From assembly GCA_010909165.1 (NCBI GenBank), contig MU008190.1, positions 62,001 to 126,000 of the forward strand: a stretch of DNA of 64,000 nt, given 5' to 3'. A program made the translations under genes and the position numbers. Under the pieces are notes generated by a model that was not told where the DNA came from, ran no database searches, and saw only the letters and a list, made by a program, of their open reading frames with translations. This document shows, piece by piece, positions 2,571-56,900 of this stretch. Position 1 is the stretch's first letter, and each line of letters starts with the position of its first letter. The stretch comes from Anthoceros angustus (lineage: Eukaryota; Plantae; Anthocerotophyta).

Positions 2571-2582
2571 AGCAGCGGCCGG

Positions 2583-19513: not shown

Positions 19514-19586
19514 AGTCTGGAAAAATGTAGCCGAGTATACATTCGAGTATACCTTTTGGAATCTCAAATCTTTAATTTGATCATCT

Positions 19587-34247: not shown

Positions 34248-35168
34248 GCTTTTGCCGAATGTGTGACAGCCTCCGGTTCCGCAGAGACAGCCTGAACGCT
34301 GATGCGATGCTGATGCTGCTACTCCCAGCGGGTGGGACGTTGGACCCGCCGCAGCTCCCCGTCCACGTCGCCCTGGTGGTGAACATCGTCACCGGGTGCT
34401 GTTGGTGTCTTCTGAAGCCACATCTCCAGGCTGCCCAGGTTGCTTCGAGGATGCCGCTCAATGCAGCTTCCAATTCGTTGAAGCTGCGCTGGCTGCTGGC
34501 GCATCCCGTGGCTGAAAGATCACTCGCCGCACTCCCTTGCTCACATTAGCCACCCACCTGCCCGCTGTTCCAGTTTTTCACTCCACAACGGTTACTTCCC
34601 AACTTTCCATGGATTTAGTGTTAGCTACTGGGCTTTAAGCAAGGAAAATAATGTACTACCTAATAAGTTAAATAACACAATTTAGTTTACTTTTTCACAT
34701 CAAATCTATTTTATATTTTATAACAATAAAAATATTTTGTTATAACCATACACATGCACTCCAATATCACCATGTCTTTTTGCTAGCGGTTCCTTTGCCT
34801 CTATATATGAAATATAGAGTCATTCCCTCTAAAACTCAATATTACAATACATACACCTATTATACCTATTCTACAAAGAAACGAAAGCAGAATTACGCCA
34901 CCTATTTTACCTATTTTACAAAAGCGGAGATAGTGTGCACCACATATATTATACTTATTCTACAAAGACTCATAGATAGTTATCAAGAGTAGACGTTATT
35001 AATAAGCAAGATAGGAAATCCCATCTACCCCTGAAGTCCGAGGAGGAACAACCAAAAAGGGCTAATTGTGAAAGGGGAAGTCCTAGTCCCCTCGAATGCC
35101 TTTCCCGTAACTACCTACTGCACTAATGATATCGTGATCAGGGACGATGAAGGGCCTACCTACTATCG

Positions 35169-36661
35169 ATTGCCTGAACAGCGACAGCAAGCGGGTGAGC
35201 CGAGCCGAGCCGAGCCGGCAAGCAAGCTGCGGACATGAACAGGGAAACATCCACCAGGCCCACCTGCGAGTAGAGCTTCTCCGCCTGCGGAACATCGCCA
35301 TGCTCGAAGGCCTCGTTCCCCTGCTCCTTGATCGCCAGCGCGGCCAGGTTGTTCTCCGGGTCCGCAGCCCCGCACTGCACCGCCAGCAGCCGCGCCGCGC
35401 CGCCGCGGTGCTGCAGTGGCTCACCATCAGCTCCGCGGGCAGCACCACCAGGTTGGGGCCATTTCCACATTTCCCCAAACATCCACACGACTCCACGGCC
35501 ACTCCAGGCGGCGCCAGGCTCCTCATCACGTCCAGCGTCTGCAGACTCCCGCTCTTCCGGCACGCCCGGTTCACGCAAACTCGCACCTCCACCTCCTGCT
35601 GTCCCGCCCGCGCTGCTGCCAATTGCCATTTCCTGTAACGGCCACGCGCGGGCCTGCCTCGGCCGAAATCAGGCCGGTCCAGCAACGGCCCGGACGGAGC
35701 AGCAGCCCACATCGCCTCCAGCCCCATGCTTTTTGCCGAATGTGTGTGACAGCCTCCGGTTCCGCAGAGACAGCCTAGACGCTGATGCGATGCTGATGCT
35801 GCTACTCCCAGCGGGTGGGACGTTGGACCCGCCGCAGCTCCCCGTCCACGTCGCCCTGGTGGTGAACATCGTCACCGGGTGCTGTTGGTGTCTTCTGAAG
35901 CCACATCTCCAGGCTGCCCAGGTTGCTTCGAGGATGCCGCTCAATGCAGCTTCCAATTCGTTGAAGCTGCGCTGGCTGCTGGCGCATCCCCGTGGCTGAA
36001 AGATCACTCGCCGCACTCCCTTGCTCACATTAGCCACCCACCTGCCCGCTGTTCCAGTTTTTCACTCCACAACGGTTACTTCCCAACTTTCCATGGATTT
36101 AGTGTTAGCTACTGGGCTTTAAGCAAGGAAAATAATGTACTACCTAATAAGTTAAATAACACAATTTAGTTTACTTTTTCACATCAAATCTATTTTATAT
36201 TTTATAACAATAAAAATATTTTGTTATAACCATACACATGCACTCCAATATCACCATGTCTTTTTGCTAGCACGAGGTTCCTTTGCCTCTATATATGAAA
36301 TATAGAGTCATTCCCTCTAAAACTCCAATATTACAATACGCCACACCTATTATACCTATTCTACAAAGAAACAGAAACAGGGTACGCCACACATATTATA
36401 CCTATTTTACAAAGAAACAGAGATAGTGTGCACCACATATATTATACTTATTCTACAAAGACTCATAGATAGTTATCAAGAGTAGACGTTATTAATAAGC
36501 AAGATAGGAAATCCCATCTACCCCTGAAGTCCGAGGAGGAACAACCAAAAAGGGCTAATTGTGAAAGGGGAAGTCCTAGTCCCCTCGAATGCCTTTCCCG
36601 TAACTACCTACTGCACTAATGATATCGTGATCAGGGACGATGAAGGGCCTACCTACTATCG
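35169..36661 (-). pseudogene. Tandem duplicate of about 33686-35168 containing a 3'-truncated copy of the ferredoxin/TPR gene and its upstream region
   Basis: Near-identical 1.48-kb repeat differing mainly by small indels. Junction ...cctactatcg|attgcctgaac. The duplicated CDS is frameshifted and lacks the later TPR exons. Confidence 0.9.
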
Positions 36662-37079
36662 GTGCCAAAGAAGCCGCTAGTCCTACGCACGTAGCCATCC
36701 TAGAAAGAGCTTTAGCCAGCGCTTTCTGCAGAGCTATGGAAATCCACTCCTAGAGGACAAGGCGGTACCCCGAGGGCCTATGAGGATCAAGCATATATGA
36801 GGAGTAGTATCTCGAGTTATTAAAGCACGAAAGAAAGCTCGGAGGAACACTTTGTAATCCTCTATCCCCTATGTAAAATAAAATCATCGAGGAACTCTTG
36901 GAATAACACGATAAAGTTGCAAGGGGGTTAATATACAAACCCCCTTAGAAGAGGGGTGAACCCTCTTGTCCGATTGCGCACCGGCCGAATATCCCCTATT
37001 TCAGGAGGGACATAACGAACATGACCATAGAGCGTGCGCATCTTTGTCGTGTTACCGTGTATAGCGGTGTGGAAGGATT

Positions 37080-38300
37080 TTAGGTGCTTGGTAGGCGGCG
37101 CATTCTCGATTTTATGTGACTAGACGGTGAAAGCGCACTATGGCACAAAACCGTTGTCCAATAGGGTAAAAGCATGCGGGCATAGTAGCGAGCAGTTCTG
37201 TTACTTGTGCTCACTTGAAAACAACAAACTACTCTCCGAGCGAAGAGGAAAGCGGCTCTGTCGACAAGATCTAACACTACAGCAACGTTACGCAAAGTAT
37301 TCCTAGTATCCTCGTCGAACGTATCTATTTCCTCCAGAGCAAGAGAATCTCCCGTGACGTCGTTTACCTGGTCGTCGGTCGCCTCAATATGTCCCCACGC
37401 CGCATCCAAAGTCGTCTGCCCCTCTTCCAAAGTGTTATCGTCGCTCATTCTCTTCCTTCTCGACCGTAAAGACACAATCTGGGCTTTCATGCAGTCAGTG
37501 TCACTAATGCACACTTCCTTGGCCCAGGCGAGAGGGTCCTCGTCCATGCGGATCAAATGTAAGCTCTTCCTCGCATTTGGTAACACTTCAAACCCATGAA
37601 TGCGCTGGGAATATAACCCGCGCATCTCATGTCCGCTTCGATGGCAACGCAGTTTCGACCACTCAATAATGCAGCCAGGATAGTTGTGCCACTCCCGGAA
37701 CATGCATCAACCACCCACTCTCCTTCTTTGGAAAATGCCTCCACAAACGTCCGCATAAGGCCCAGTGGCCGTTGGTAGGACACCACACGTTTGTCGTGAG
37801 ATAAGTATACATGCTTCTTCACAACCGTGTCGTGAGTAATGACGGATCTCCCATTATTGAATCTCCCTCGCTGATTTCCAGGGAGCATGTTGGCCTTGTC
37901 TCTTGAACATTCTTCCTTCACACACCAGCCCACAGTGACGTACTCCAATGTTTCACAGCCCACCCCCTCGGCGTGCATGTTCGTCTTGTCCCAAACGAAG
38001 GACACCATCCCACCTTTTCGGCACCACTTTCTCATACATTCTCTGACAGTGTGGGAGTCCTCCACTCCATGCATCACAATAAAGCGGAATTCCTCTGCGT
38101 TGTCTTCTCCGCAAAACTCTCGAACAACATGACATCATACTCCGTTAATTCTTGTATCCATTGGGCCTATATTGAAGCCCCTCGGCATCCATCACGAAAG
38201 TCTTGGCGTGCGTAAATAGCCACGCATGTCCAGCTGGTCTCAATCGTCTTGAACTTGAGAGTCGATTGGGACGTTGAAAACAAATAGCCTCTTCCATAGT
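37080..38300 (-). pseudogene. Beta-class (N4-C/N6-A) DNA methyltransferase domain, copy A, with C-terminal extension; frameshifted
   Basis: FVWDKTN, then YQRPLGLMRTFVEAFSKEGEWVVDACSGSGTTILAALLSGRNCVAIEAD (SAM-binding motif I at 37682-37714), which parallels the N6_N4_Mtase consensus QKPxxL...GDxVLDPFxGSGTT...GRxxIGIE. Confidence 0.85.
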
Positions 38301-39160
38301 GTTATCGCTCATTCTCTTCCTTCGATCAGAAAGACACAATCAGGCTTTCATGCGATCGTGTCACTAATGCACACTTCCTTGGCCCAGGCGAGGGTCCTCG
38401 CCCATGCGGATCAAATGTAAGCTCTTCCTCGCATTTGGTAACACTTCAAACCCATGAATCTGCGGGGAATATAACCCGCGCATCTCATGTCCGCTTCGAT
38501 GGCAACGCAGTTTCGACCACTCAGTAATGCAGCCAGGATGGTTGTGCCACTGCCGGAACATGCATCAACCACCCACTCTCCTTCTTTGGAAAATGCCTCC
38601 ACAAACGTCTTCATAAGGCCCAATGGCCGTTGGTAGGGGCACACCACACGTTTGTCATGAGATAAGTATACCTGCTTCTTCACAACCGTGTCGTGACTAA
38701 TGACAGAGCTCCCGTTATTGAATCGCCCTCGCTGAGTTCCCGGGAGCATGCTGGCCTTGTCCCTCGGACATTCTTCCTTCACACACCCCTCGTGGCCTCC
38801 AATGTTTCACAACCCCTCGGCGTGCATGTTCGTCTTGTCCCAAACGAAGGACACCATCCCACCTTTTCGGCACTTTCTCATACATTCTCGGCGGTGTGGG
38901 AGTCCTCCACTCCATGCATCACAATAAAGCGGAATTCTCGCGTTGTCTTCTCCGCAAAACTCTCGAACAACATGACATCATACTCCGTTAATTCTTGTAT
39001 CCATTGGGCCTATATTGAAGCCCCTCGGCATCCATCACGAAGGGAGTCTTGGCGTGCGTAAATAGCCACGCATGTCCAGCTCTACTGGTCTCAATCGATC
39101 GAACTTGAGAGTCGATCACTGGACGTTGAAAACAAATAGCCGTCTTCCATATCTTTGTCC
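38300..39160 (-). pseudogene. Beta-class DNA methyltransferase domain, copy B (diverged tandem copy)
   Basis: Same motifs (PYQRPLGLMKTFVEAFSKEGEWVVDACSGSGTT, motif I at 38541-38573). About 10% diverged from copy A in the stretch compared by eye. Confidence 0.85.
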
Positions 39161-40730
39161 GCTAAGGCCCTCGCTCAATTTCCAGCCCTTTCCGCTTGTT
39201 TACCTCAAAATGAAGTGCTGGAAATCTTAAGCGAGACGGGTTGTCGATGTCTTTTAATTGCTGCACAATAAAACCCAAAACGTAAGGACACATAAGGGCT
39301 TGCTCGCCACATGTGGGCGCCGGCGGCGCCATCGGCCGACACATCCTGTGGAGGCGCGGCTGCCGGCGCCATCGGCAGACACATCTGGGCGCGGCTTGAC
39401 AAAACCCTTCATGCTCACACAAGGTGGAGGGCGGCCCGGTGCCTACATGCACGCACCATGTCCGGGGCGCCCGGCGCCCGCCGCCCGCATCATGGTGGCG
39501 GGCGCCGGCCGGCGGCGCCGCATCCATCAGCGGCGGCGCCGGCCGGCGGCGCCCTCCATCAACAGATGGTAAAGGAAAAAATTCGGTCAAGGGGAAGATT
39601 TACCTTTCCGGCAAACTGTGTTTGAAACCGCGCGATCATAGCGTCCGTTGAATGCTGTGGGTATTCTCTCCGGACTTCCTCAAACGATGTGCAGTCAAGA
39701 TGCTTCGCCATAGCAACTTGGATGATATGCAGCTTCTTCCGCAAAGTGATGTCGTCCTCCATGCCTTTCGTGTCGGACCAGCTAATACTTTTCCATTCTT
39801 GTAAGTAATATCATTGTCCACACTCGCTGCGGTATACCGAAAGCCTTCCATGGCTTTGCTAGCATGTCCTTGACTTCACATATCTGTTGCAACCTTCTGG
39901 GAATCTTCCCCGACCTTCCGTTTTCCTTTGCCCTTCTTGCTTGTGCCTGCTGCTGTGTGTCTTTTCTGTTCCGGCAACTCCCCAGCCTCCCACTTCGTAA
40001 ATATTTTGTCAATATTCTCCCAAATTCTCCCTTCTTGCTTTGCAATACAAAGTATATGAGTCCTGTTATCCACCTTGTTTTGCTTGTAAACGTCGTCTTC
40101 TCTCCCCTCGTCGTCGTCAATGAGGCCCAGAACCTTGTACAAATTGAATTTCCATGCCATAGTCATATGCACCCCTTCACGCTTGGCAATAAGCAGCTCA
40201 TCACGGAGATACCTGACCTGCTCGATGAAAGACATTTTTCTTCTCTTGTCCGACATAATATTGTGGTCTGTAGCTAGAACCCGCATCTCCTGAAGTGTGA
40301 GACTGCAGTACACGTGAGCCTCGACATCCGAAACTGTTTTTCGGTGCCATATCAAATGCTTCATCGCCGCAAAAGTGTGATTCCGCCCAGTACTCCCATG
40401 ACATAAGTTTTTGCCCGAATCGCTTGCCAATCCAAAGGTGCTTCCATGTTGTCGCATTCCGCCGGTCTATCATACATGAGGCAATACGCCTTCCTCTATT
40501 CTCCCTTTCGATATGACCCGGGCCAAGTAATTCGTCCATGCTTCGTCAACCTTCCGTATCTGTGCATCCGGAGTGATATGCGAAGCTGGCCTTAGATTCT
40601 CCAGCTTCACCAGCACTGTCTCCGGAACAACTTTCTTCGCATACGCCGATTCCCTTACACGGGTTAAAGGGTCTTCATCTCTCACCGCTGCTTCTAACCT
40701 CTCCTCATCTTGGGACATGAACTGTCGCAA
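39160..40730 (-). pseudogene. ParB/Srx-like domain plus helical region, upstream of and co-oriented with the methyltransferase
   Basis: Across frameshifts it reads IRKVDEAWTNYLARVISKG...KTYVMGVLGGNHTFAAMKHL...HVYCSLTLQEMRVLATDHN...KMSFIEQVRYLR. A GT-AG intron spans 39603-39261. Confidence 0.7.
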
Positions 40731-43700
40731 TGGGTGCCACCCTCGCGTCTAAGCTTCCAATCGGTCTGGACTTTTTCTTTTTCTTCTGAGGACCCTGATC
40801 ATCGCTATGGGCCCTCTTTCGTGAAATCTGCAGGGGAAGTCCTTTCCCTTTTCCTCTGCCATGCACAGCATAGTGATCGGATTCCCCTACCGCCATGTCC
40901 ATGGCATCGGCCCTCGCCGGCCTTGCTCCCTCCCTCACTTCCCCACATGCTTCATGCTCCTCCTGAGAGGTGCTTCTCAGGCGCCGGCCGCGCCTCCTCT
41001 CTGGCCTCTCCTGTTTGCCCAATGGGCGGAGGTGGAACCCCTCTGACACCTCGAAGGCGGCCGGCGCCCTCCTCTGCATGGCCTCTCCTGTTTGCCCAAC
41101 CAGGCAGGTGGAACCCCCTCGGCTCGAATGGCGCGGCCGGCGCCCTCCTCTCCTGCATGGCCTCTCCCTATTTGCCCGACCTGTGGGCCAAGGGAGGAAC
41201 CCCCTACAGCACCTTGAAGGGCGCCGGCCGGCCGGCGCCCTTCCACAGTGCTTGCGGGCGGGCAGCCTTCCCGGCCCCTCGCCGGGCGCGGTCGGCCGGC
41301 GCCCTTCAGCTCCCTCCTCCCTTGCAAACCCTATGAACCAGTTAGGGTCTGGCGTCGGCAACTCCTGGCGAGTCTGGCCGACACCAGGGGCGCCGGCCGG
41401 CCGGCGCCCTGGACCTGCCTCTGCCTCGTAGGGCTCTGTTGCCACATCCATGGAATTGCCAGGCACAGCATATTCCATAAACAGTTCCGCATCTCCCTCT
41501 TCACCCTGTGCATCCGAATCCACATCGTCATCATCCGAATGGCCTAACATGTCCGGGATCGTCCGCTCGTCTTCATCAGATGGACCAAGCTCGCTTTCCA
41601 CCGATGTCTCATCATCCCCCTCCATTTCCTCGCCTGCTATCCGAGAACTGCGAATAGACATAGCCCGCCTATGTGCTAAAACGCTTTGTGTGAGCTCAGC
41701 GCAGAGACAGGCAATGAAACTTTTGCCCATCTGCTCCGCCTGCAAACCAACATGGATGGACAGAATAAGCCACACCAGATGCACATTACAATTAGCCAGA
41801 AACCCAAGAACATGCCACCCAAATGCACTCACCGATGTCTCTTGCCGACAGTCTCTGAATAACTCGATCAAGCGTGAAGGTGCACATTTCTTAAAGATCA
41901 ACCCTGCAAATGTCACCTGGAACAATCTGTAGGCCTGTGGGTTTGGATGCAATGTCGTGAAGTCTTGCGGCTTCCTCACCACAAGGAGTTGTGCTTGGTG
42001 CCAGTGGTCATGTCCAATGTTGCCCAAATCACCCCACCTCGCCTCGTGGGGCTCATTAGGCAAAGCATCTTTGTATCCCACCACCCACAACTTGAGCAGG
42101 TGTCCAAACGCATCCTCGTCCTCCGGTTCCTCTTCCGCAAATCATCCAATTCTTCTCAACAACGCGAATACTCGCATACTTGCGACCTCCGAAATGCATA
42201 GTCTCCTCGTAGTTGAAGGCGATTGAATCGGGCGCATCGGCCTCGCCCGGCCTAGCTCCCTCCCTCACTTCCCACATGCTTCATGCTCCTCCCGAGAGGT
42301 GCTTCTCAGGCGCCGGCGGCGCCCTCCTCTCCTCTGCATGGCCTCTCCTGCTTGCCCCAGGGCAGGTGGAACCCCTCTGACCTCGAATGGCGCGGCCGGC
42401 GCCCTCCTCTCCTCTGCATGGCCTCCCTGTTGCCCGACCAGGCCAAGGGAGGAACCCCCTGACACCTTGAAGGCGCCGGCGGCGCGCCCTTCCACAGTGC
42501 TTGCGGGCGGCGGCCTTCCCGGCCCCTCGCCGGGCGCGGTCGGCCGGCGCCCGCCTCCTCCTCCCTTGCAAACCCTATGAACCCGATTAGGGTGCGTCGG
42601 CAACTCTGGCGGCCGCCGGCCGGCGCCGGCGGCGCCCAGACTGCCTCGCCTCGTGGGGCTCATTACCATGGAATTTCCGAGCCGGATATTCCAGTTCGCA
42701 TCTCCTCTTCACCCTGTGCATCCGAATACACATCGTCATCATCCGAATGGCCTAACATGTCGTCGCTCGTCTTCATCGGATGGACCAAGCTCGCTTTCCA
42801 CCGATGTCTCATCATCCCCTCCATTTCGCGCTGCTATCCGAGAACTGCGAATAGACATAGCCGCGCCTATGTGCTAAAACGCTTTGTGTGAGCTCACGCG
42901 AGCAATGAAACTTTTGCCCATCTGCTCCGCCTGCAAACCAACATGGATGGACAGAATAAGCCACACCAGATGCACATTACAATTAGCCAGAAACCCAAGA
43001 ACATGCCACCAAATGCACTCACCGATGTCTCTTGCCGGCGGTCTCGAATAACTCGATCAAGCGTGAAGGTGCACATTTCTTAAAGATCAACCCCGCAAAT
43101 GTCACGTGGAACAATCAGAGGCTGTGGGTTTGGATGCAATGTCGTGAAGTCTTGCGGCTTCCTCACCACAAGGAGTTGTGCTTGGTACGCCAGTCATGTC
43201 CAATGTTGCCCAAATCACCCACCACCTCGGGCTCGATTAGGCAAAGCATCTTTGTATCCCACCACCCACAACTTGAGCAGGTGTCCGCATCCTCGTCCTC
43301 CGGTTCCTCTTCCTGGCAAATCATCCAATTCTTCTCAACAACGCGAATACTCTGCATACTTGCTGCCAGCCTCCTGAAATGCATAGTCTCCTCGTAGTTG
43401 AAGGGCGATTGAATCGGAACTGGCATCGGGCGTTTCTGCACACTTCTCTCAGCTTCATCACCCCCACCTACGCCTCGCGTGGTGCTTGCCTTTCCCGAGT
43501 TGTGGCTGTGAGCCCTCCCACCACTCGCCCCTCCTGCTGTGGAATTCGCTCCGATTTGTGCCAGAGGTTGCTCATACTGCCTGCCGCCGGGATGCACTCT
43601 GCCTTGTGGCGCACTGGGCTGCACCACATCCTCTGTTGTCGCTGCTGTCCGTTTCTTGCTTCCTCTCCCCTTCTTCTGCTTGGGCAAAGGGAGGTCCTGT

Positions 43701-43747
43701 TCAGGCTCAAAGGCATTCTTCTCCTTCCCCCTCCTCCCGGATGCCAT
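40731..43747 (-). pseudogene. N-terminal part of the cargo gene: basic start, unknown helical domain (two tandem copies), acidic tract, GC-rich repeats
   Basis: ORF start MASGRRGKEK at 43747. ORF 40705-42090 runs toward the ParB region and contains a 93-nt GT-AG intron (41832-41740). About 40870-42240 is repeated at about 42240-43380. Confidence 0.6.
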
Positions 43748-44759
43748 CTGATTCAGCGATCGCGCTCACCGTCGCGCAAATGCGAGCAGTAGCGGGTTAA
43801 GGGAGAGCAGGTGCGGTAGCGGCCCCTCCTTGCGATCACAGGCGCACACACCTCGATCACAGCGCACACACACGGTCGGAGGCGGGCGCAACTTCCGAGT
43901 GAACAAGTGGAAAGAATTGACTCAAGGGCCGGCACCCGTCAGAGATTAAGTTGGCTCTCTTTTCGTATTAGGGCTTGCAGATTTTATAGGCATAAGGGTG
44001 ATATAGGTGATATAAGGCATAGGTATATTTGTCCTGATTTGATATCCGGTGTATTTGCATCGGATCGTAAACCACATCTGGGATTCCCTTTGCCATGTGC
44101 GATATTAAACACCGATGTCAGGTGGCGGCGCCGCCCGGCGAAAGGGCTGTCGACATTGCGGCGCCGCACACAATCCCGATTACGTGTGCTCATACATCTT
44201 TGTTCTATAAGGCGGACATTGGGGACCTCCAGGTAGCTTTCTTCAACGCGGTCGCTATTGTTCCATTGTCTGCAGCGTTCTCCATAGCGCCTATTCCCGA
44301 GTTGTAGCCCTTGATGTTACGGTGGCACACAAGACGAAGAGGTGCGGCTACCCGTGTCATTGAAATGCACATGTGCACGCCATTCAATCCATACACGCTA
44401 ACGGTTGGGTGTTTGGGAGAAGAAGCGAGATGGCGGCGCCCACCAATCGAGGCGCACACACTTCCATATATGGGCAGCGATCCGGACAACCCATCCAATG
44501 ACGGCAATGTTGGTGGAATCGCACACCGCCTGAGGTAAGGTTAGACGTTTGGGTTTCATTGGCATATTGTTTTCCCCAACTTTTCTCATCAACTGTGGTG
44601 GGAACCATGCATGTAGGTAAAAGGAGTGGAGGTGGAATTCCACTTTTGAAGCCGGTGGTATCGCCAATTATCCCGCCGTCTGTGCCACCGACCCCACGAA
44701 ACCTTAACTTATATGCGGCAATTAGGAGAAGTCCTTCCCGTGGAAGATATGGGGAACAG

Positions 44760-47700
44760 CCATGTAGCAGACCCCGCGCTGACAAAATGGCGGAACCCAA
44801 TCGCAGCCTAAGACGAGGATTGTTCCTACGCGGAGATCATGAGGCGAAGCATTGCACCATGAAGATGAGGGCAGCGACGATGTCTTCGAGGCGGACACGA
44901 TCGTGGGGAATTCCCTCCGCTATTACATTCCAAGCAAAACCTTTGAGCGATTCATTGCGGTGAAATCGCGTGGAAGATGCATGCGAGGAGGAGGGCTTCC
45001 GGCCTTTGCGAAGAAGTGATGTGGCTGCAATCGCTGGAGAGTTTGAAGCCATCTTTGCAATCAAATGTGTGTTCAAATTGACAAAAGAAAAATTCCAAGA
45101 ACATCGGTATAGGTTCCTCGCATGGGACGTCAAGAGCGAGACACACCTTGAGTCCCTGTAAAGGTGGTAAGTGATGGCGGAGTTCATACAAAGGTTCAAC
45201 CCACCTTGTTGGTGCGACATCTTACGATGTTGCCTCGAGCATTTAGGCGGGTTTTCATAAGCGATATGAAGAGTTGAAAAGCAGGGTGCAGCGCAACTCG
45301 CCGTGGGATAACCAGAGACCAAATCCATCACAGCTGTCAGCATCATCCGATGATGCACTTGCCTGGATGGACAACGTTTTCATGTCCATGGCGGAGCGGC
45401 TCCCCAATGCGCAGGTGTACAATCTTCCGGATACGTACACGAAGCTAGAGCTATGGGGCCAGTACAAGCGACAATGTGAGCGGTCACAAACAAGGGCTAT
45501 TACATATGCCTGGTTTCTAAGGCTTTGGAAGGTGCACTTCAGCAGTGTTAAGATACCTAAGTCCAACAGATTTTCTACGTGTGCGATATGCGCGGGGTTA
45601 AAGGCAACCATTGAACACTTTTCAAAGGTGGATCAAGGTATGGCATCCCTTCCCACCATTCCCTTCCCTATTTGCGTTGGCTATGTGGCGTGATGTCAAG
45701 ATAGCCATAGTTGGGGAGCGGCGGCCGGCCGGCGCCTCCTCCCAACTATCCCTGCGTACCCCCACCACGGAACCTTAACTTATATGCGGCAATTAGGAGA
45801 AGTCCTTCCGTGGAAGATATGGGGAAACGACCATGTAGCGAGACCCACGACAAAATGGCGGAACCCAATCGCGACCTAAGGCGAGGATTGTTCCCTCGCC
45901 GACGGAGATCATGAGGCGAAGCATTGCACCATGAAGATGAGGGCAGCGACGATGTCTTCAGGCGGACACGATGGGAATTCCCTCCGCTATTACATTCCAA
46001 GCAAAACCTTTGAGCGATTCATTGCGGTGAAATCGCGTGGAAGATGCATGGGGAGGAGGGCTTCCGCGTGCCTTTGCGAAGTGATGTGGCTGCAATCGCT
46101 GGAGAGTTTGAAGCCATCTTTGCAATCAAATGTGTGTTCAAATTGACAAAAGAAAAATTCCAAGAACATCGGTATAGGTTCCTCGCATGGGACGTCAAGA
46201 GCGAGACACACCTTGAGTCCTCAAAGGTGGTAAGTGATGGCGGAGTTCATACAAAGGTTCAACCCCACCTTGTTGGTGCGACATCTTACAGATGTTGCCT
46301 ACGAGCATTTAGGCGGGTTTTCTGTATTGGTCATAAGCGATATGAAGAGCTGAAAAGCAGGGTGCAGCGCAACTCGCCGTGGGATAACCAGAGACCAAAT
46401 CCATCACAACTGTCAGGATCATCACAGGATGCACTTGCGTGGATGGACAACGTTTTCATGTCCATGGCGGAGCGGCTCCCCAACGCGCAGGTATACAATC
46501 TTCCGGACACGTACACGAAGCTGGAGCTATGGGCCCAGTACAAGCGACAATGTGAGCGGTCACAAACAAGGGCTATGACATATGCCCGGTTTCTAAGGCT
46601 CGAAGGTGCACTTCACGGTGTTAAGATACCTAAGTCCAACGGGTTTTCTACGTGCGATATGCAGGTTAAAGGCAACCATTGAACACTTTTCAAAGGTGGA
46701 TCAAGGTATGGCATCCCTTCCCACCATTCCCTTCCCTATTTCGTTGGCTATGTGGCGGTGATGTCAAGATAGCCATAGTTGGGAGCGGTGGCCGGCGCCT
46801 CCTCAACTATGGCTATCTTGACATCACGAGATATCTGCGTACAAGGAATGGTTTAGGGGAGGCGCGGCCGGCCGGCGCCTCCTCCCCGAGAGGGAGGGTT
46901 TAGAGGGAGGCGGCCGGCCTTCTCCCTTCGGAAGTTGATTGTACCGGCATGGGCGGCTTGTAGATGCTAAAGAAACGTACATTGTTGGTGCGGAGAAATA
47001 TCAACATGCGCTTGAGGCACATCAGATAGTGCGGCGTACAAGGAATGGTTTAAGGGAGGCGCCGGCCGGCGCCTCCTCCCAGAGAGAGAGGGAGGGTTTA
47101 GAGGGAGGCGCCGGCCGGCGCGCCTCCTCCCTTCGGAAGTTGATTGTACCGGCATGGGCTTGTAGATGCTAAAGAAAGCGTACATTGTTGGTGCGGAGAA
47201 ATATCAACATGCGCTTGAGGCACATCATGCGGCGGTTATCGTGAGCGTGCCAAAATGGCCAAACACCGGACGAAAAGCTACGTTGAGCCCCACAAGTACA
47301 TGTTACTCGCTATTGATGGGATGGACCAAAAGAAAACGGAGATCCCACATTTTTACGGTGGCCAAAGAATTTAAGTGAGGAGTGCCGATAGTCATGTGGT
47401 GGGCTGCATGGTTCATAACTATACATATAAAGCGACAAGATATTTGCACTATGCAAACCTTGAACGATGCAAATCTAACGATATGCATCATCCAAGATGT
47501 TCGCACAATTATGAAGGATATTGCCTAAAGTCTTGTACTTGCGGTTGGACAATACTTGTCGAGAGAACAAAAATCAACTTCTTTTGCATATCCGAATATG
47601 TTAGTAGACATGGGTACATTTCGGAAGGTGAAGGTGGGCTTTACGCTAGTGGGGCACACACAGATTGACGGATGTTTTCACGGTTTAAGCCTGAAACAAG

Positions 47701-50700
47701 GAAGCGCACACATTGCGCTTCTCGATATTCTCGGAAAAGCATACACACCAACTCCGGTGAAAATTCTCACCGAGGTCCGGACTTGAGTCATATGTGTGGC
47801 CCATCGGAAGAGGAGATGGTCGGCTATCGTACAGTGGTCACGAATAACCTTCGTTCCAACACCGTTTAAGATAACACGGGAGGACAAGGCGGAGCGAGGT
47901 CTAGTCACGGTTATTCAAGCAAGCAATATTCGACATCTCCGCTATGGGAGGCGAAGGAGGCTTGGAGTTCTTGAAGTTCTGCATCTAATGACATCACAAG
48001 ATCACCTCTCCTAGCACCGCGTCTAGGGACAAAAAGGCTCACTTCCGGGTTTAAAGGCAGAGGTGTGGCCCATCTTAAAGAAGGGCTCTCGGCTTGCGTG
48101 CATATATTGCCGCAGATGAACATTTGTGGTGGGAGGCCTTCAGGAGGACCAGCATGAGATTGCGGTTATCGTGGAGAACAACATTGGCTGGCGCTCAAAA
48201 GCCACAAAATGGCGGAACCCAATCGCGACCTAAGGCGAGGATTGTTCCCTCGCGGAGATCATGAGGCGAAGCATTGCACCATGAAGATGAGGACGATGTC
48301 TTCAGGACACGATCGTGAATTCCCTCCGCTATTACATTCCAAGCAAAACCTTTGAGCGATTCATTGCGGTAATCGCGTGGAAGATGCATGCGAGGAGGAG
48401 GGCTTCGTGCCTTTGCGAAGAAGTGATGTGGCTGCAATCGTGGAGAGTTTCGGAAGCCATGCAATCAAATGTGTGTTCGAAATTGACAAAAGAAAAATTC
48501 CAAGAACATCGGTATAGGTTCCTCGCATGGGACGTCAAGAGCGGAGACACACCTTGAGTCCCTGTAAAGGTGGTAAGTGATGGCGGAGTTCATACAAAGG
48601 TTCAACCCCACCTTGTTGGTGCGACATCTTCGATGTTGCCCTACGAGCATTTAGGGTTTTGTATTGGTCATAAGCGATATGAAGAGTGGCGGTGCAACTT
48701 GTGGGATAACCGAGACCAAATCCATCACAACGCCGATCATCACAGGATGCACTTGCGTGGATGGACAACGTTTTCATGTCCATGGCGAGCGGCTCCCCAG
48801 CGGTATACAATCTTCCGGACACGTACGGAGCTATGGGCCCGGTACAAGCGACAATGTGAGCGGTCACAAACTATGACATATGCACGGTTTCTAAGGCTCG
48901 AAGGTGCACTTGAGTGTTAAGATACCTAAGTCCAAGTTTTTCACGTATGCGATATGCGGTTAAAGGCAACCATTGAACACTTTTCAAAGGTGGATCAAGG
49001 TATGGCATCCCTTCCCTCCATTCCCTTCCCTATTTGCGTTGGCTATGTGGCGTGATGTCAAGATAGCCATAGTTGAGAGCGGTGGCGGCGCGCCTCCTCC
49101 CGAACTATGGCTATCTTGACATCCGAGATATCTTGCGTACAAGGAATGGTTTAAGGGAGGCGGCCGGCGCGCCTCCTCCCCGCGGAGAGAGGAGGAGGGT
49201 TTAGAGGGAGGCGGCCGGCCGCGCCTCTTCTCCCTCCCCTTCGGAAGTTGATTGTACCAGCGGCTTGTAGATGCTAAAGAAACGTACATTGTTGGTGCGG
49301 AGAAATATCAACATGCGCTTGAGGCACATCATGCGGCGGTTATCGGCAGAGCGTGCCAAAATGGCCAAACCCAGCTACGTTGAGCCCCACAAGTACATGT
49401 TACTCGCTATTGATGGGATGGACCAAAAGAAAGCGGAGATCCCACATTTTTACGGTGGCCAAAGAATTTAAGTGAGGAGTGCCGCATAGTACATGGTGGG
49501 TGCATGGTTCATAACTATACATATAAAGCGGCAGCATATTTGCACTATGCAAACCTTGAACGATGCAAATCTAACGATATGCATCATCCAAGATGTTCGC
49601 ACAATTATGAAGGATATTGCCTAAAGTCTTGTACTTGCGGTTGGACAATACTTGTCGAGAGAACAAAAATCAACTTCTTTTGCATATCCGAATATGTTAG
49701 TAGACATGGGTACATTTCGGAAGGTGAAGGTGGGCTTTACGCTAGTGGGGCACACACAGATTGACGGATGTTTTCACGGTTTAAGCCTGAAACAAGGAAG
49801 CGCACACATTGCGCTTCTCGATATTCTCGGAAAAGCATACACACCAACTCCGGTGAAAATTCTCACCGAGGTCCGGACTTGAGTCATATGTGTGGCCCAT
49901 CGGAAGAGGAGATGGTCGGCTATCGTACAGTGGTCACGAATAACCTTCGTTCCAACACCGTTTAAGATAACACGGGAGGACAAGGCGGAGCGAGGTCTAG
50001 TCACGGTTATTCAAGCAAGCAATATTCGACATCTCCGCTATGGGAGGCGAAGGAGGCTTGGAGTTCTTGAAGTTCTGCATCTAATGACATCACAAGATCA
50101 CCTCTCCTAGCACCGCGTCTAGGGACAAAAGGCTCACTTCCGGGTTTAAAGGCAGAGGTGTGGCCCATCTTAAAGAAGGGCTCTCGGCTTGCGTGCATAT
50201 ATTGCCGCAGATGAACATTTGTGGTGGGAGGCCTTCAGGAGGACCAGCATGAGATTGCGGTTATCGTGGAGAACAACATTGGCTGGCGCTCAAAAGCCAC
50301 GGAAATGGTTTTCTAGGTCGGACGTTGAAGATACAGATGCAGCCTTTGCGCTACTAAATGAAAGCCTTACGAAGCATTATTGAGGGAGCTTGCTGTGATA
50401 TGTACTTGGGGCTTACCAAGTGGCTCGGCAGCAAGAAATGGAGCGGCGAATGGCGATGTGGTGAGATTGGAAATGGAATGTTCATCGCAATTCCATGCTT
50501 GACGATACGCACAGACCTTTTGGATCGGAAGAGTGGTGGAAGTGAAACATGATGCTTTCCGTCCGAGTCTAATGGTCCACAGTGAACATCGCTTTCAAGG
50601 CGATATGTTGAGGAGTACATCGTCCGCGGACAAGGGCCCAAGCATCGGGAGAAGTCATCAAGGCAAGGGTCAAAGACCGTGTTCCCCAAAAACATACAAG

Positions 50701-51883
50701 AGATTTACATCAATGATACAAGAATATTGTACTATGGTTTCAACCTTACTACGGAAGCATTTATACGCCAACGACAAAAAGGGCTATAAAGGAGAAGCTA
50801 AGCGAGATCTGGCGGCTTGATTGAACCCGGCCCGGTGAAGAGTGTCGGACAATAGCGATGAGGAGGAGGCGGATATTGACAACATGGATGATGTTGAGAA
50901 ACTGTCTTGGAAGAACCCTAGGCGAACATGACTTGACATTGTCTTTGTTTATGGTCATTGTTCTAGAAGGGAATAATAAAAACCGTACACATCGGGCGGA
51001 GGCAAGACTCCTTTCTTGTCTTTTCGTTTTCATATGGTACACCACACTAGTGGTCGATCATCATGTCGCAACAACACTAAACAAAAGGCTTCGATAATTG
51101 TGTTTCACGATTGAAACCACGGTTGGAAGTTTGACAAGCGGCAAAGCGGCGCGAATCTCACCTTAATGCCGGCGATTGCGACTATCAATCGTTGCGGGTG
51201 GGTACAACGTCCAGTATGGCGCCGGCCGGCGCCTACACACCGAATAGCGCCCATAAAATGTGAAAGTTGCATATATAGGGATGATTTCTACCACCCTTTC
51301 CGTGTCATCACATACCCTCTCAAGTTTCACAGTGCGGTCACCGAATAACCTTTCGTTCCAACACCAGTTCAAGATAACACGGGAGGACAAGGCGGAGCGA
51401 GGTCTAGTCACGGTTATTCGAAGCAAGCAATATTCGACATCTCCGCTATGGGAGACTGAAGGAGGCTTGGAGTTCTTGAAGTTCGTCCCGTCTAATGACA
51501 TCACAGCATCACCTCTCCTAGCACTGCAGTCTAGGGACAAAAAAGGCTCACTTCTAGGTTTAAAGGCAACAGAGGGTGTGGCCCATCTTAAAGAAGGGCT
51601 CTCTGGCTTGCGTGCATATATTGCCGCAGATGAACATTTGTGGTGGGAGGCCTTCTGGGAGGACCAGCATGAGATTGCGGTTATCGTGGAGAACAACATT
51701 GGCGCTCAAAAGCCACGGAAATGGTTTTCTAGGTCGGACGTTGAAGATACAGCTGACCTTTGCGCTTACCAAATGAAAGCCTTATACGAAGCATTATTGA
51801 GGGAGCTTCCACGCGTGATATGTACTTGGGGCTTACCAAGTGGCTCGGCGCAAGAAATGGAGCGGCGAATGGCGATGTGGTGA
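44760..51883 (+). mobile_element. DDD-type DNA transposase gene (DUF7869/Sola-like motif set), present as several overlapping frameshifted copies
   Basis: CCLRAFRRVFCIG; LPDTYTKLELW...WKVHFSSVKIPKSNRFSTCAIC; LLAIDGMDQKKAEIPHF (47315 and 49412); LPKVLYLRLDNTCRENKNQ (47521-47577); KVKVGFTLVGHT...IDxMFSRF; FKITRED...KQYS. A GT-AG intron lies at 46230-46291. Confidence 0.85.
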
Positions 51884-53970
51884 GATTGGAAATGGAATGT
51901 TCATCGCAATTCCATGCTTCGGATACGCACAATGTGAGACCTTTTGGATCGGAAGAGTGGTGGAAGTGAAACATGATGCTTTCCGTCCGAGTCTAATGGT
52001 CCCTGATGCAGACGGAACATCACGCTTTCAAGGCGATATGTTGAGGAGTACATCGTCCGCGGACAAGGGCCCAAGCATCGGGAGAAGTCATCAAGGCAAG
52101 GGTCAAAGACCGTGTTCCCCAAAAACATACAAGAGATTTACATCAATGATACAAGAATATTGTACTATGGTTTCAACCTTACTACGGAAGCATTTATACG
52201 CCAACGACAAAAGGGCTATAAAGGAGAAGCTAAGCGAGATCTGGCGGCTTGATTGAACCCGGCCCGGTGAAGAGTGTCGGACAATAGCGATGAGGAGGAG
52301 GCGGATATTGACAACATGGATGATGTTGAGAAACTGTCTTGGAAGAACCCTAGGCGAACATGACTTGACATTGTCTTTGTTTATGGTCATTGTTCTAGAA
52401 GGGAATAATAAAAACCGTACACATCGGGCGGAGGCAAGACTCCTTTCTTGTCTTTTCGTTTTCATATGGTACACCACACTAGTGGTCGATCATCATGTCG
52501 CAACAACACTAAACAAAAGGCTTCGATAATTGTGTTTCACGATTGAAACCACGGTTGGAAGTTTGACAAGCGGCAAAGCGGCGCGAATCTCACCTTAATG
52601 CCGGCGATTGCGACTATCAATCGTTGCGGGTGGGTACAACGTCCAGTATGGCGCCGGCCGGCGCCTACACACCGAATAGCGCCCATAAAATGTGAAAGTT
52701 GCATATATAGGGATGATTTCTACCACCCTTTCCGTGTCAGTTCATACCCTCTCAAGTTTCACAGGGTACGGCGGGACATGATGCATAGGGTTTGAGGCCC
52801 ACAATGGTCTCAAATTCTAGAATGACCAAGTCTTTGTTCGATTGACCGGCCTGACTGGGGAAGTTAATGGGCTCTATTTCGACACTTCCACAGGTGTCTG
52901 CCTTTCCTAATACCATGCACACACCCTGGCGGGTCCATGAAACCGATGCTTCGCTCGGGTGCACACCCTACTTTTGTGTGAAATTATACGGTTTAGTGGA
53001 TCACGATTCCCAACCCATTGAAACCCCTTTGGTGTATATTATGCGGAAAACCCACGTATATTCACCCCTTGCAACTTTATCGTGTTGAATACGAGTAGGA
53101 CAATCGGGTCCAGTTGAATAATCCTCCACTCTTGGTTAGGAAGAAGATTCTAATTTATTTGGTTTAAAGGCAACAGAGGTGTGGCCCCATCTTAAAGAAG
53201 GGCTCTCGGCTTGCGTGCATATATTGCCGCAGATGAACATTTGTGGTGGGAGGCCTTGGGAGGACCAGCATGAGATTGCGGTTATCGTGGAGAACAACAT
53301 TGGCTGGCGCTCAAAAGCCACGGAAATGGTTTTCTAGGTCGGACGTTGAAGATACTGATCTGACCTTTGCGCTACAAATGAAAGCCTTCGACGCATTATT
53401 GAGGGAGCTTCCACGCGTGATATGTACTTGGGGCTTACCAAGTGGCTCGACACAAGAAATGGAGCGAATCGAATGGCGATGAGATTGGAAATGGAATGTT
53501 CATCGCAATTCCATGCTTGACTGACACGCACAATGAGACCTTTTGGATCGGAAGAGTGGTGGAAGTGAAACATGATGCTTTACGACCGAGTCTGCTGGTC
53601 CACTGGTACAGGACGGAACATACGGACGCTTATGAAGGACGATATGTTGAGGAGTACATCGTCCGCGGACAAGGGCCCAATCATCGAAGGGGCAGGTCAT
53701 CAAGGCAAGGGTCAAAGACCGTGTTCCCCAAAAACATACAAGAGATTCACATCAATGATACAGTAATATTGTACTATGGTTTCAACCTTACTACGCGGAA
53801 GCATTTATACGCCAAAGACAAAAGGGCTATAAAGGAGAAGCTAAGCGAGATCTGGCGGCTTGATTGAACCCGGCCGGTGAAGATGTGCATAACAGCGATG
53901 AGGAGGAGGCGGATATTGACAACATGGATGATGTTGATGGAAATCGTATGGAAGAACCCTAGGGCGAACA
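50450..53970 (+). mobile_element. C-terminal BAH/Tudor-like (SH3-fold) domain and acidic tail of the transposase gene, three copies
   Basis: IGNGMFIAIPC...ETFWIGRVVEV...LLVHWYR...YEGRYV...VILYYGFNLT...AIKEKL (best copy 53442-53867; others near 50450-50820 and 51870-52256). The fold call is by pattern only. Confidence 0.55.
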
Positions 53971-56900
53971 TGACTTGACATTGTCTTTGTTTATGGTTGT
54001 TGTTCTAGAAGGGAATAATAAAAACACATACATCGGGCGACCGGCGACTTTCTTGTCTTTTCGTTTTCATATGGTACACCACACTAGTGGTCAGTCATGT
54101 CGCAACAACACTAAACAAAAGGCTTCGATAATTGTGTTTCTGATTGAAACCACGGTTGGAAGTTTGACAAGCGGCAAAGCGGCGCGAATCTCGCCTTAAT
54201 GCCGGCGATTGCGACTATCAATCGTTGCGGGTGGGTACAACGTCGCTTTGCCCGATGTAAGCGCCCGCCTACCTACGAGAATGACGCCCATAAAATGTGA
54301 AAGTTGCATATATAGGGATGATTTCTACCACCCTTTCCGTGTCATTCATACCCTCTCAAGTTTCACAGTGCGGGACATGATGCATAGGGTTTGAGGCCCA
54401 CCATGGTGTCAAATTCTAGAATGACCAACTCTTTGTTCGATTGACCTACGGGAAGTTAATGGGCTCTATTTCGACACTTCCAGGTGTCCGCCTTTCCTAA
54501 TACCATGCACACACCAGGCGGGTCCATGAAACCGATGCTTCGCTCGGTGCACACCCTACTTTTCAGCAGGAAATTGTCCTGTGGATCAGATTCCCAACCC
54601 ATTGAAACCCCTTTGGTGTATATCAGACAGAAACCCCTTCACATATATTCACCCCTTGCAACTTTATCGTGTTGAATACAGGAGTAGGACAATCTGGGTC
54701 CCAGTTGAATAATCCTCCACTCTTGGTTAGGAAGAAAGATTCTAATTTATTTAGTTTAAAAGAGTTTCGGCAAATGCCATGATGTAGAACAACAGTCTTA
54801 AGTGGTGTCAACTATTGAATTGCCTAGTTTAAAGAGTTTTGGCAGTGACCACCACAGAAAGGAGGCCTCAAATCGTGTGGTTGTGATAGGCTTTTGCACT
54901 CCTTAATTAACCTCGGAAGTCCTTGCCCATAGCCCCATGAGTCTCAGGCGGGGGATGGCTATGTCGCCTTGCATAGGAGTACTTGTGAGTCTTGCTGGTT
55001 GTGCATCCTTCCGCCACCCAGCTCGGGGGTTGATGATGGCCTCGCATATATAAGTCTCGTGGGATTCGTGACAACCACATCGTGATGTAAATTTGCTCCC
55101 CTAATATAAAAGGTCCGCGTGGTGACACACCATTACACAATGTATATAGAGCTCCTTATGCGGAAAAAATCCGCTCTCCTTAGTTATCGAAAACATGGCG
55201 TGTCGGACAATAGCGATGAGGAGGCGGATATTGACAACATGGATGATGTTGATGGAAACGTGTCTTGGAAGAACCCTAGGGCGAACATGACTTGACATTG
55301 TCTTTGTTTATGGTTGTTCTAGAAGGGAATAATAAAAACCACATACACATCGGGCGGTGGGCGTACTCCTTTCTTGTCTTTTCGTTTTCATATGGTACAC
55401 CACACTAGTGGTCGATCATCATGTCGCAACAACACTAAACAAAAGGCTTGATAATTGTGTTTCTGATTGAAACCACGGTTGGAAGTTTGACAAGCGGCAA
55501 AGCGGCGCGAATCTCGCCTTAATGCCGGCGATTGCGACTATCAATCGTTGCGGGTGGGTACAACGTCGCTTTGCCGCAGCGCCGCGTACCACGAAATAAT
55601 ATAAAATGTGAAAGTTGCATATATAGGGATGATTTCTACCACCCTTTCCGTGGGTTCATACCCTCTCAAGTTTCACAGTGCAGGCGGACATGATGCATAG
55701 GGTTTGAGGCCCACCATGGTGTCAAATTCTAGAATGACCAACTCTTTGTTCGATTGACCGGCTGGTAGGGGAAGTTAATGGGCTCTATTTGACACTTCCA
55801 CGGTGTCCGCCTTTCCTAATACCATGCACACACCAGGCGGGTCCATGAAACCGATGCTTCGCTCGGGTGCACACCCTACTTTTCGGTGTGAAATTACGAT
55901 TTAGTGGATCACGATTCCCAACCCATTGAAACCCCTTTGGTGTATATTATGCGGAAACCCCTTCACATATTCACCTTGCAACTTTATCGTGTTGAATACG
56001 AGTAGGATGCAGGTCCAGTTGAATAATCCTCCACTCTTGGTTAGGAAGAAAGATTCTAATTTATTTAGTTTAAAAGAGTTTCGGCAAATGCCATGATGTA
56101 GAACAACAGTCTTAAGTGGTGTCAACTATTGAATTGCCTAGTTTAAAAGAGTTTTGGCCAGCGAAAGAAAGCCACCACAGAGGAAAGGGGGAGGCCCCTC
56201 CAAATCGTGTGGTTGTGATAGGCTTTTGCACACTCCTTAATTAACCTACAGAAGTCCTTGCCCATAGCCCCATGAGTCTCAAGGGCGAGGGGGATGAAAA
56301 CATAGTCGCCTTGCATAGGAGAGTACTTGTGAGTCTTGCTGGTTGTGCATCCTTCCGCCACCCAGCTCGGGGGGTTGATGATGGCCTCGCATATATAGGG
56401 ATGATTTCTACCACCCTTTCCGTGTCATTCATACCCTCTCAAGTTTCACAGTGCGGGACATGATGCATAGGGTTTGAGGCCCACCATGGTGTCAAATTCT
56501 AGAATGACCAACTCTTTGTTCGATTGACTGGGGGAAGTTAATGGGCTCTATTTCGACACTTCCACGGTGTCTCGCCTTTCCTAATACCATGCACACACAC
56601 ACCAGGCGGGTCCATGAAACCGATGCTTCGCTCGGGTGCACACCCTACTACGGTGTGAAATTATGCGTTTAGTGGATCACGATTCCCAACCCATTGGAAA
56701 CCCCTTTGGTGTATATTGTGAAACCCCTTCACATATATTCACCCCTTGCAACTTTATCGTGTTGAATACGAGTAGGACAATCGGGTCCAGTTGAATAATC
56801 CTCCACTCTTGGTTAGGAAGAAGATTCTAATTTATTTAGTTTAAAGAGTTTGAATGCCATGATGTAGAACAACAGTCTTAAGTGGTGTCAACTATTGAAT

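Follow-up and report, generated by a model that had tools for sequence, protein, structure and literature searches.

To our knowledge, transposons that encode their own DNA-modifying enzyme are rare, the cases being fungal Kyakuja-Dileera-Zisupton (KDZ) elements with TET/JBP genes, some retrotransposons with DNA methyltransferases (DNMTs), and giant-virus Mariner elements with genes of the restriction-modification type. The KDZ transposons that carry TET/JBP genes are reportedly those of basidiomycetes, and cytosine-5 DNMTs are said to have been captured by retrotransposons in dinoflagellates and in a charophyte. VANC, encoded by the Mutator-like VANDAL elements, is a sequence-specific anti-silencing factor that acts on the element's own repeats, and in the Dam-regulated IS10 and Tn5 adenine methylation gates both transposase expression and the activity of the ends; these two systems are functional analogies only, with no homology to the element described here. 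The Mariner elements of giant viruses carry a methyltransferase (C5 or Methyltransf_26) and a restriction-endonuclease partner (PMC3627910), and two horizontally acquired N4-methylcytosine (4mC) methyltransferases of eukaryotes have been described, N4CMT in bdelloid rotifers (PMC8885841) and MpDN4MT1 in Marchantia (10.1101/2021.02.12.428880). The locus described here lies in a stretch of 64,000 nucleotides of Anthoceros angustus (contig MU008190.1, positions 62,001 to 126,000; hereafter the window), and all coordinates are positions in this window, save those given with another locus. Positions 36905-53086 hold a defunct DNA transposon, presumably of the cut-and-paste kind, in a land-plant nuclear genome, with a pseudogene for a putative ParB-fused methyltransferase (MT) and a pseudogene for a DUF7869 transposase standing head-to-head between terminal inverted repeats (TIRs). 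The identity and structure of the element, as set out below, can be stated with high confidence.

The domain order of the accessory protein is that of bacterial and phage fusions of ParB_N and N6_N4_Mtase (PF02195 + PF01555), and the folds match Noc/ParB and CcrM/RsrI. The eukaryotic proteins are, however, longer, with a helical linker of ~200 residues and a ParB-like domain that Pfam ParB_N does not recognise; most of them have a non-canonical motif IV, and they are encoded in an intron-bearing TIR transposon rather than in a packaging or partition locus. The KDZ elements are similar in being eukaryotic DNA transposons with a linked, presumably epigenetic, DNA-base-modifying accessory enzyme, but that enzyme is a dioxygenase and not an amino-methyltransferase, PF18758 takes the place of DUF7869, and a ParB targeting domain is lacking. 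The giant-virus Mariners and the DNMT retrotransposons are likewise mobile elements with a DNA methyltransferase of their own, whereas the gene found here is ParB-fused and beta-class amino-methyltransferase-like, and sits in a cellular TIR transposon without an endonuclease. N4CMT and MpDN4MT1 share the permuted amino-methyltransferase fold of the PF01555 type, of prokaryotic origin and in a eukaryote; they are single-copy host genes with SPPY/TSPPY, demonstrated 4mC activity and a chromodomain fusion or no fusion, whereas members of the transposon family, known from sequence and models, combine D-x-P-x with a ParB domain and with linkage to a transposon. A preliminary description, made from the letters of the window, had suggested a link to DN4MT1 and to domesticated 4mC enzymes. 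This was not supported: SPPY occurs in no member of the family, N4CMT is one of many fold matches, and DN4MT1 was not compared directly. No such family appears in a 2016 census of eukaryotic amino-methyltransferases, which gives few for land plants (PMC4738411), and N4CMT is reported to have no eukaryotic homologues of its own (PMC8885841). In the open literature searched (Repbase and subscription journals lay outside the search), no description was found of DUF7869/PF25273, or of ParB and a methyltransferase together in a eukaryotic transposon.

The ends of the element, which the preliminary description had not found, are formed by a 22-nt TIR flanked by a 4-bp GAAT. The left TIR is present in its orientation once in the whole window and is complementary at 22/22 positions to the right-end copies that end at 53086, 54673 and 56763; a further right copy, ending at 55993, is complementary at 20/22. 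The same host flank (GAATAC...) follows each right copy. The left flank ends in ...TTGGAAT and the right flank opens with GAAT, which gives GAAT/GAAT. The first right end lies short of position 53970, where the element had been taken to end, and the reiterated right ends stretch its span to 56763. As present, the element measures 16-20 kb, against ~9.6 kb after removal of duplications. From ~33.7 kb to the right edge (33684-63000), the window consists of direct duplications that follow one another without a gap, in units of 0.8-2.4 kb with 87-98% identity; this chain crosses the boundaries of host gene, transposon and flank alike, and within it the right end of the element and its host flank are reiterated four times. 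The MT domain is present in two tandem copies (37421-38298 and 38288-39151, 91% identity) and the N-terminal part of the MT gene is duplicated as well (40904-42231 and 42234-43417). Of the transposase there are three copies of the N-terminal part, two of the core and about four of the tail with the right end. What was first read as long genes thus consists in part of re-read duplicates. The duplicate copies differ at a transition to transversion ratio of 1.1-2 and by many small indels; one-base indels in homopolymers account for 22/88, and a fifth of the transitions are at CpG. Sequencing noise, considered as the source of the duplications, found no clear support in that proportion of one-base homopolymer indels. 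The same lesions occur in both duplicate copies and are therefore not random noise. The chain may be a genuine stutter duplication or an assembly artefact.

Relatives were collected by an exhaustive HMMER search with a 174-aa piece of the MT protein and by further searches. The HMMER relatives comprised Ginkgo Gb_37443, Chara braunii GBG86584, an intact 789-aa protein from a Joint Genome Institute (JGI) metagenome (P0011), and several Logan proteins; the top match, a Parabacteroides HYR-repeat protein (P0001), proved to be a compositional artefact and was discarded. The family is multicopy: MT gene models number at least 15 in Chara, where they are spread over different scaffolds, and Riccia sorocarpa has two loci on two chromosomes; one member was found in the sea cucumber Holothuria leucospilota. 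A scan of the JGI metagenomes with the family alignment gave nothing, as did an Rfam search of the window. Two scans of the IMG/VR viral contigs revealed no relatives, and hence no sign of a viral home.

A divergent pair of DUF7869 transposase and MT genes was observed in five further loci (L002, L006, L009, L010 and L011; Table 1), with a spacing of 0.7-6 kb between the genes and a constant orientation. In the window, L002 and L006, both genes are enclosed by one TIR pair, and all of these TIRs start with AACA. L002 is a complete 8.85-kb element, in which a 28-nt TIR of 96% identity (AACACYGAATTCGATGAAACCGGATAAA) encloses both genes at 19 and 44 nt from the contig ends. In L006 of Chara, an element of ~11.9 kb, a 25-nt TIR (24/25), AACATGCACTTCGTGAAAA[A/C]TGGAC, stands around both genes with GCTA/GCTA flanks, so that a perfect 4-bp duplication was found in two elements, as GAAT in the window and as GCTA in L006. 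On the question, fixed beforehand, of whether other genomic copies have the two genes linked or unlinked, the five further loci favoured linkage. They also bore out the proposal of one mobile element with both genes, as did the single TIR pair in three of the elements. Since elements with these two genes were met again in stoneworts, liverworts and marine plankton, they represent a real and apparently undescribed transposon family. With strong confidence, the family is defined by TIRs of 22-28 nt that start with AACA, by a putative target-site duplication of 4 bp, and by a gene for a DUF7869-type transposase with an accessory gene divergent from it. The family spans marine eukaryotes, charophytes and land plants; the element had been called a plant transposon, which fits its land-plant host but not the family, which is also present in marine plankton and in a sea cucumber.

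Individual members showed peculiarities of their own. The sea-cucumber gene (L008 10001-17366, Holothuria leucospilota CM055961) has nine exons, a ParB-like N-domain and a degenerate motif IV, LDMPQDW, and may represent an animal copy that has been domesticated or is decaying. In L007 (Chara braunii BFEA01000127), an MT copy lies between ~7 kb direct repeats (2640-9682 and 12608-19622, 82-90% identity) that carry an Ulp1 (C48 peptidase) open reading frame (ORF), which suggests that the copy was captured inside, or is nested in, another large element. In L011 (Riccia sorocarpa CM100799), the divergent transposase fragment upstream of the MT gene is accompanied by a second transposase copy, on the plus strand (13784-15636) and ~2 kb downstream of that gene; the locus is either two adjacent elements or one rearranged element.

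On the minus strand of the window, N6_N4_Mtase (PF01555) was matched twice by Pfam above the curated cut-off, in the ORFs 37553-38077 and 38411-38782, with E values of 1.7e-11 for copy B and 1.2e-11 for copy A. The matches cover profile positions 149-213 of 221 only, which correspond to the half that binds S-adenosylmethionine (AdoMet). Both copies have the permuted order, with the motif IV remnant MPRGF upstream of motif I, DACSGSGTT. In both, the frame breaks exactly at motif IV (...FVMD / PRGF...), where the continuing frame has a stop, and a second stop follows ~20 codons on. Copy B matched P0003, P0009 and P0012 in tblastn with E values of 1e-20 to 1e-25. Together with the modelled fold of the relative P0011, these profile matches and the permuted order supported the claim of a beta-class N6/N4 methyltransferase gene on this strand.

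The ParB-like region, in which an in-frame TGA TAG stands at 40472-40467, matched L004 in tblastn with E 1e-20, and all Chara copies and L002 with E 1e-6 to 6e-4. The ParB-like and linker pieces are 38-54% identical to contig L004, which encodes a protein of the DLPRG clade. Where the family has a GGGHSREAR box, the window has HGSTGRNHTFAA, placed much like the GxxR (arginine-patch, nucleotide-binding) box of ParB proteins, of which it is a candidate counterpart. Pfam ParB_N did not match the ParB-like piece of the window, a PDB sequence search with this piece returned nothing relevant, and a word-indexed homologue search with its 193 aa, whose length filter leaves out full-length relatives, gave no match; its putative ParB identity rests on homology to a family whose N-domain is modelled with the ParB/Noc fold. 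Accordingly, of the two domains first read in this gene, the methyltransferase was supported by profile and by fold, whereas ParB was supported at the level of fold, through the relatives, and not by its profile or by the PDB sequence searches. The helical domain assumed to precede them found no support, having no relatives and consisting in part of translated GC palindromes, and the coding status of 40705-43747 is doubtful. Both genes had been thought to contain spliceosomal introns. In the MT gene, the interruptions coincide with duplications, palindromes and stops, cannot be told from insertions or duplications, and are therefore not callable as introns; the GT-AG introns of the transposase, described below, were retained.

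The family alignment conserves the GGGHSREAR box near the N-terminus, the helical linker, a motif IV of the form D-[FIL]-P-[YCHR]-G, W-x-K-P-N, Q-K-P and motif I, FSGSGTG, with motif IV upstream of motif I in all relatives. Canonical LDPPYG was found in the marine clade only (P0182 and P0033), and P0182 covers PF01555 in full; motif IV is DFPYG in charophytes, DIPYG or DLPRG in land plants, and DLPRG in the window clade. In a quick tree, the window was placed on a long branch with two proteins of the Logan run SRR33208241 (support of 96 in the Shimodaira-Hasegawa-like approximate likelihood ratio test, SH-aLRT), which likewise carry DLPRG. The AlphaFold2 model of the P0011 C-domain, built on the family alignment, was confident, and Foldseek matched it to CcrM, M1.HpyAVI, M.BceJIV, RsrI, MboIIA, N4CMT (8s9m) and PvuII with E values of 1.9e-10 to 1e-6. 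The N-domain modelled alone (P0011:88-325) reached a predicted local distance difference test score (pLDDT) of 86.6, and all 50 of its PDB matches listed by Foldseek were Noc, ParB, KorB, PadC, sulfiredoxin (Srx), Spo0J or ParB-like proteins; the best among those listed was 7ng0 (E 2.2e-4, probability 1.0), and the matches span 200-250 columns. Pfam ParB_N found no match in P0011, P0182 or P0055, and a family N-domain profile found nothing relevant among the PDB sequences. The beta-class amino-methyltransferase fold and the ParB/Noc fold thus hold, at the level of models, for the intact relatives, and in the accessory protein a ParB/Srx-like N-domain with a helix-turn-helix (HTH) is predicted to be connected by a helical linker to an amino-methyltransferase domain of the circularly permuted beta class. 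The distant prokaryote-type relatives P0047 and P0141 are fusions of ParB_N and N6_N4_Mtase, and a bacterial DNA methyltransferase with DVPYG (P0139) was also found. Because bacterial and phage fusions have the same architecture, capture of the accessory gene from such a source is most likely, which is consistent with a prokaryotic or phage origin.

On the plus strand, Pfam matched DUF7869 with an E value of 2.4e-6, and the motifs DGMDQ, LDN and GHT..ID are readable, in agreement with the DGMDQ/LDN/ID transposase first read there; DGMDQ, LDN and GHTH(E/D)D(I/V)DQ were read directly as conserved in the transposases of the family. The N-terminal part matched L002 and L009 in tblastn with E values of 1e-6 to 3e-10. 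The head-to-head arrangement at a distance of ~1 kb was confirmed, the MT ORF starting at 43747 and the first transposase coding sequence at ~44787. In two copies, removal of a predicted GT-AG intron brings two transposase exons into one frame, and such introns in the transposases indicate a eukaryotic nuclear setting. Both copies of the core have a nonsense codon after ...HFYGGQRI and several frameshifts. The tails of the different elements have a short motif in common, F.A...F.I.KV...V.WY, but the BAH/Tudor-like domain that had been read into the tail was not recovered: none of five tails matched a BAH, Tudor or chromo profile in Pfam, even at E values up to 10. From the stops and frame breaks in both genes, it follows that both are pseudogenes; the window copy is itself a fossil and can write no mark. 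In the transposase of the Tara Oceans contig (L010), a 49-nt GT-AG intron at 2548-2596 restores the DUF7869 core (…EEVKIGFMMVGHTHDD…), which indicates that this marine element is eukaryotic, with a host that has very short introns.

The GC-rich palindrome common to the element (core GGCGCCGGCCGGCGCC), also reported in the preliminary description, occurs nine times against none expected, always inside the element (39.5-52.7 kb). Each of the linked elements has a palindrome family of its own, concentrated in the divergent intergenic region, in introns or inside genes. These palindromes would fit candidate parS-like sites for the ParB-HTH domain. A second repeat, GATGTCAAGATAGCCATAGTT with its complement, forms hairpins (100% over up to 27 nt) and was observed at 45689-45731, 46758-46828 and 49051-49123; it flanks the GC palindromes inside the transposase intron and resembles a small foldback insertion.

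Several observations weigh against reading the locus as one member of a two-gene transposon family with an amino-methyltransferase. The short metagenome flanks of L002, GATATGG and GATATCG, contain no clean 4-bp duplication. A TIR search in Riccia L009 and in L010 found nothing convincing, and the Riccia copies yielded no termini. No transposase was found within 10 kb of four Chara MT loci (L001, L005, L007 and L012) or of the sea-cucumber gene. A PDB sequence search with the L002 transposase gave no match, and DUF7869 is the only Pfam assignment of the transposases. On the side of the methyltransferase, the minus strand lacks any (D/S/N)PP(Y/F/W) motif from 36.5 to 44 kb, motif IV in the streptophytes is D[FIL]P[YCHR]G and in no case canonical (D/S)PPY, and its aromatic residue is replaced by C, H or R in several members. 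Because the contig breaks at the repeat, the L002 flanks may derive from different insertions; the Chara loci and their assembly are full of N gaps and nested retroelements, so that the Chara loci lacking a transposase may be fragments. Together with the rearrangement of the window by duplications that are possibly assembly artefacts, the Chara copies and the sea-cucumber gene without a neighbouring transposase are what would be expected if the adjacency were accidental or an assembly chimera, with a host or domesticated methyltransferase lying next to an unrelated transposase. However, the same partner in the same orientation was found in six loci from at least four organisms, and one TIR pair surrounds both genes in three of the six. 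Chance adjacency was rejected on the strength of the six linked loci and the common TIR pairs, and a chimera is extremely improbable. Alternatively, the methyltransferase could be left over from a viral or phage function in restriction-modification or anti-restriction, guarding element or host DNA against restriction enzymes, for example those of giant viruses, and have no part in transposon epigenetics. This idea agrees with the occurrence of ParB-methyltransferase fusions typically in phage and plasmid loci (PMC4738411) and with the methyltransferase and endonuclease genes of giant-virus Mariner elements (PMC3627910). It is nevertheless improbable, since none of the six linked loci contains an endonuclease partner, the IMG/VR viral contigs contain no relatives, and the elements have spliceosomal introns and lie on nuclear chromosomes.

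A more serious alternative concerns the enzyme itself. As no streptophyte member has a canonical (D/S)PPY, catalysis is unproven, and in the window clade it is doubtful. The land-plant accessory protein might then be non-enzymatic, with a dead MT-like domain that binds AdoMet or DNA, and fulfil for the element an architectural or regulatory role of the ParB kind, such as synapsis, control of promoters or recruitment of host factors. The motif IV of the window clade, DLPRG(L/F), has neither the second proline nor the aromatic residue; the Chara copies vary between Y and C, Ginkgo has H, and Holothuria has LDMPQDW. Motif I and QKP/W-K-PN are conserved, which points to a domain retained without its canonical catalytic loop. 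On the other hand, all sequences of the family alignment keep the D and the P of motif IV, and the pattern D-[ILF]-P-Y is similar to N-[IL]-P-Y, the motif of the Erm and KsgA adenine-N6 methyltransferases; the bacterial DNA methyltransferase P0139 has DVPYG, and DPPY is kept in the marine clade. A non-enzymatic role in land plants is thus a realistic possibility, although not the expected one.

For intact copies of the two-gene transposon, a self-marking mechanism may be put forward tentatively, as a proposal that is rather less than probable. The DUF7869 transposase would excise and insert the element at its TIRs, the ParB-HTH part would dock, parS-like, on the element's own palindromes, and the MT domain would modify the element DNA. 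DPPY in the marine clade points, by the usual rule, to N6-adenine rather than to 4mC of the SPPY type, and D-x-P-Y would likewise make N6-adenine a likelier target than N4-cytosine. Such a mark could counteract host silencing, or link transposition with replication, much as Dam methylation acts on IS10. The full version, in which intact members write a private N6-methyladenine (6mA) mark because ParB-HTH binds parS-like palindromes and the fused methyltransferase marks the element, is more speculative still and is considered unlikely. If it were true, the mark would shield the element from silencing or time its transposition to replication, and hosts would have domesticated some derivatives, the multi-exon sea-cucumber gene being one example. 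The idea that the window copy writes its own mark had to be given up with the finding that both of its genes are pseudogenes; the natural intact genes P0011 and P0182 allow the question to be asked of whether a selfish element writes 6mA in cis. The family would add a ParB-targeted bacterial-type amino-methyltransferase to the DNA modifiers borne by transposons, and would offer a route for prokaryotic 6mA/4mC machinery into and within eukaryotic genomes. The family also shows that many of the 'DNA methylase N-4/N-6 domain-containing proteins' annotated in Chara, Riccia and Ginkgo are products of transposon genes and not host epigenetic enzymes.

Table 1. Positions of the features of the window element and of the linked elements in other loci (positions in other loci are those of the respective locus).
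Locus	Feature	Position	Strand	Support or remark
Window	Left copy of putative 4-bp target-site duplication GAAT	36901..36904		Flank comparison
Window	Left TIR AACACGATAAAGTTGCAAGGGG	36905..36926	+	22/22 to right ends; AACA(C) terminus common to L002 and L006 TIRs
Window	3' ORF of MT pseudogene: end of MT domain and acidic C-terminal tail	37080..37703	-	No Pfam match, no relatives
Window	MT-like domain copy B: MPRGF at 38188, W-x-K-T-N, QRP, DACSGSGTT	37589..38188	-	Pfam; tblastn
Window	MT-like domain copy A: motif IV frame break ~39031, stop as in copy B	38444..39223	-	Pfam; duplication; alignments
Window	GC-rich palindrome cluster inside MT gene	39492..39563		
Window	Middle helical linker of MT protein	39559..39762	-	tblastn to L004, 54% identity, E 2.5e-14
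Window	ParB/Srx-like and HTH-like region (...HGSTGRNHTFAAMKHL...), broken by TGA TAG	39945..40730	-	Homology to family
Window	N-terminal region as first read, duplicated, rich in GC palindromes	40705..43747	-	No Pfam match, no relatives
Window	Divergent intergenic region between the genes	43748..44786		Orientation kept in L002, L006, L009, L010, L011
Window	Transposase N-terminal region, copies 1 and 2	44694..46796	+	tblastn to L002 transposase N-part and L009
Window	Predicted GT-AG intron (AAG/GTATGG ... TTGTAG/A)	46706..46963	+	Good consensus; L002 ORF split at same place
Window	DUF7869 core copy 1 (DGMDQ, LDN, GHTQID), nonsense codon and frameshifts	47243..47786	+	Pfam; tblastn to L002 transposase
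Window	Transposase N-terminal region, copy 3	48204-49108	+	Duplication
Window	Equivalent predicted GT-AG intron, copy 3	49000-49270	+	
Window	DUF7869 core copy 2, lesions as in copy 1	49331..49882	+	Duplication; tblastn
Window	C-terminal tail (F.A....FWIGRVVEV....WY), last copy before first right end	51840..52256	+	Motif recurs in L002, L006, L010
Window	Further transposase tail copies	50358-50820, 53442-53867	+	
Window	First right TIR copy, then GAAT	53065..53086	-	Complementarity to left TIR
Window	Reiterated right TIR copies	54652-54673, 55974-55993, 56742-56763		Same host flank after each
L002	JGI metagenome contig, divergent pair	transposase 3534->378, MT 6015-8384		
L006	Chara braunii, divergent pair	transposase 8204->5663, MT 14200-16267		
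L009	Riccia sorocarpa, divergent pair			
L010	Tara Oceans contig, divergent pair	transposase 4039->1318, MT 4754-7933		DPPY
L011	Riccia sorocarpa, another chromosome (CM100799), divergent pair			
L002	Palindromic repeats, candidate ParB-HTH/transposase sites	5676-5941		
L006	Palindromic repeats, candidate ParB-HTH/transposase sites	10673-13039		
L009	Palindromic repeats, candidate ParB-HTH/transposase sites	5528-12002		
L010	Palindromic repeats, candidate ParB-HTH/transposase sites	2558-4774		

The left 33 kb of the window contain plant genes, among them genes for a dynamin-like protein, an amino-acid transporter, a kinase and a BSD-domain protein. The best named relatives of the BSD-domain exon are from liverworts, a lycophyte and ferns, with 34-41% identity, and a Logan protein reached 59%; the host is accordingly a land plant outside the seed plants. 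Directly to the left of the transposon, a host gene for a thioredoxin-like ferredoxin/TPR-like protein was found on the minus strand (33348-34247 and 35083-35727), and a duplication with 98% identity (33684-35168 and 35166-36661) takes in part of this gene. Finally, a 310-bp inverted similarity of 72% identity connects the host-gene region with the far right of the window (26773-27082 and 62055-62353), and it is probably an unrelated dispersed repeat.

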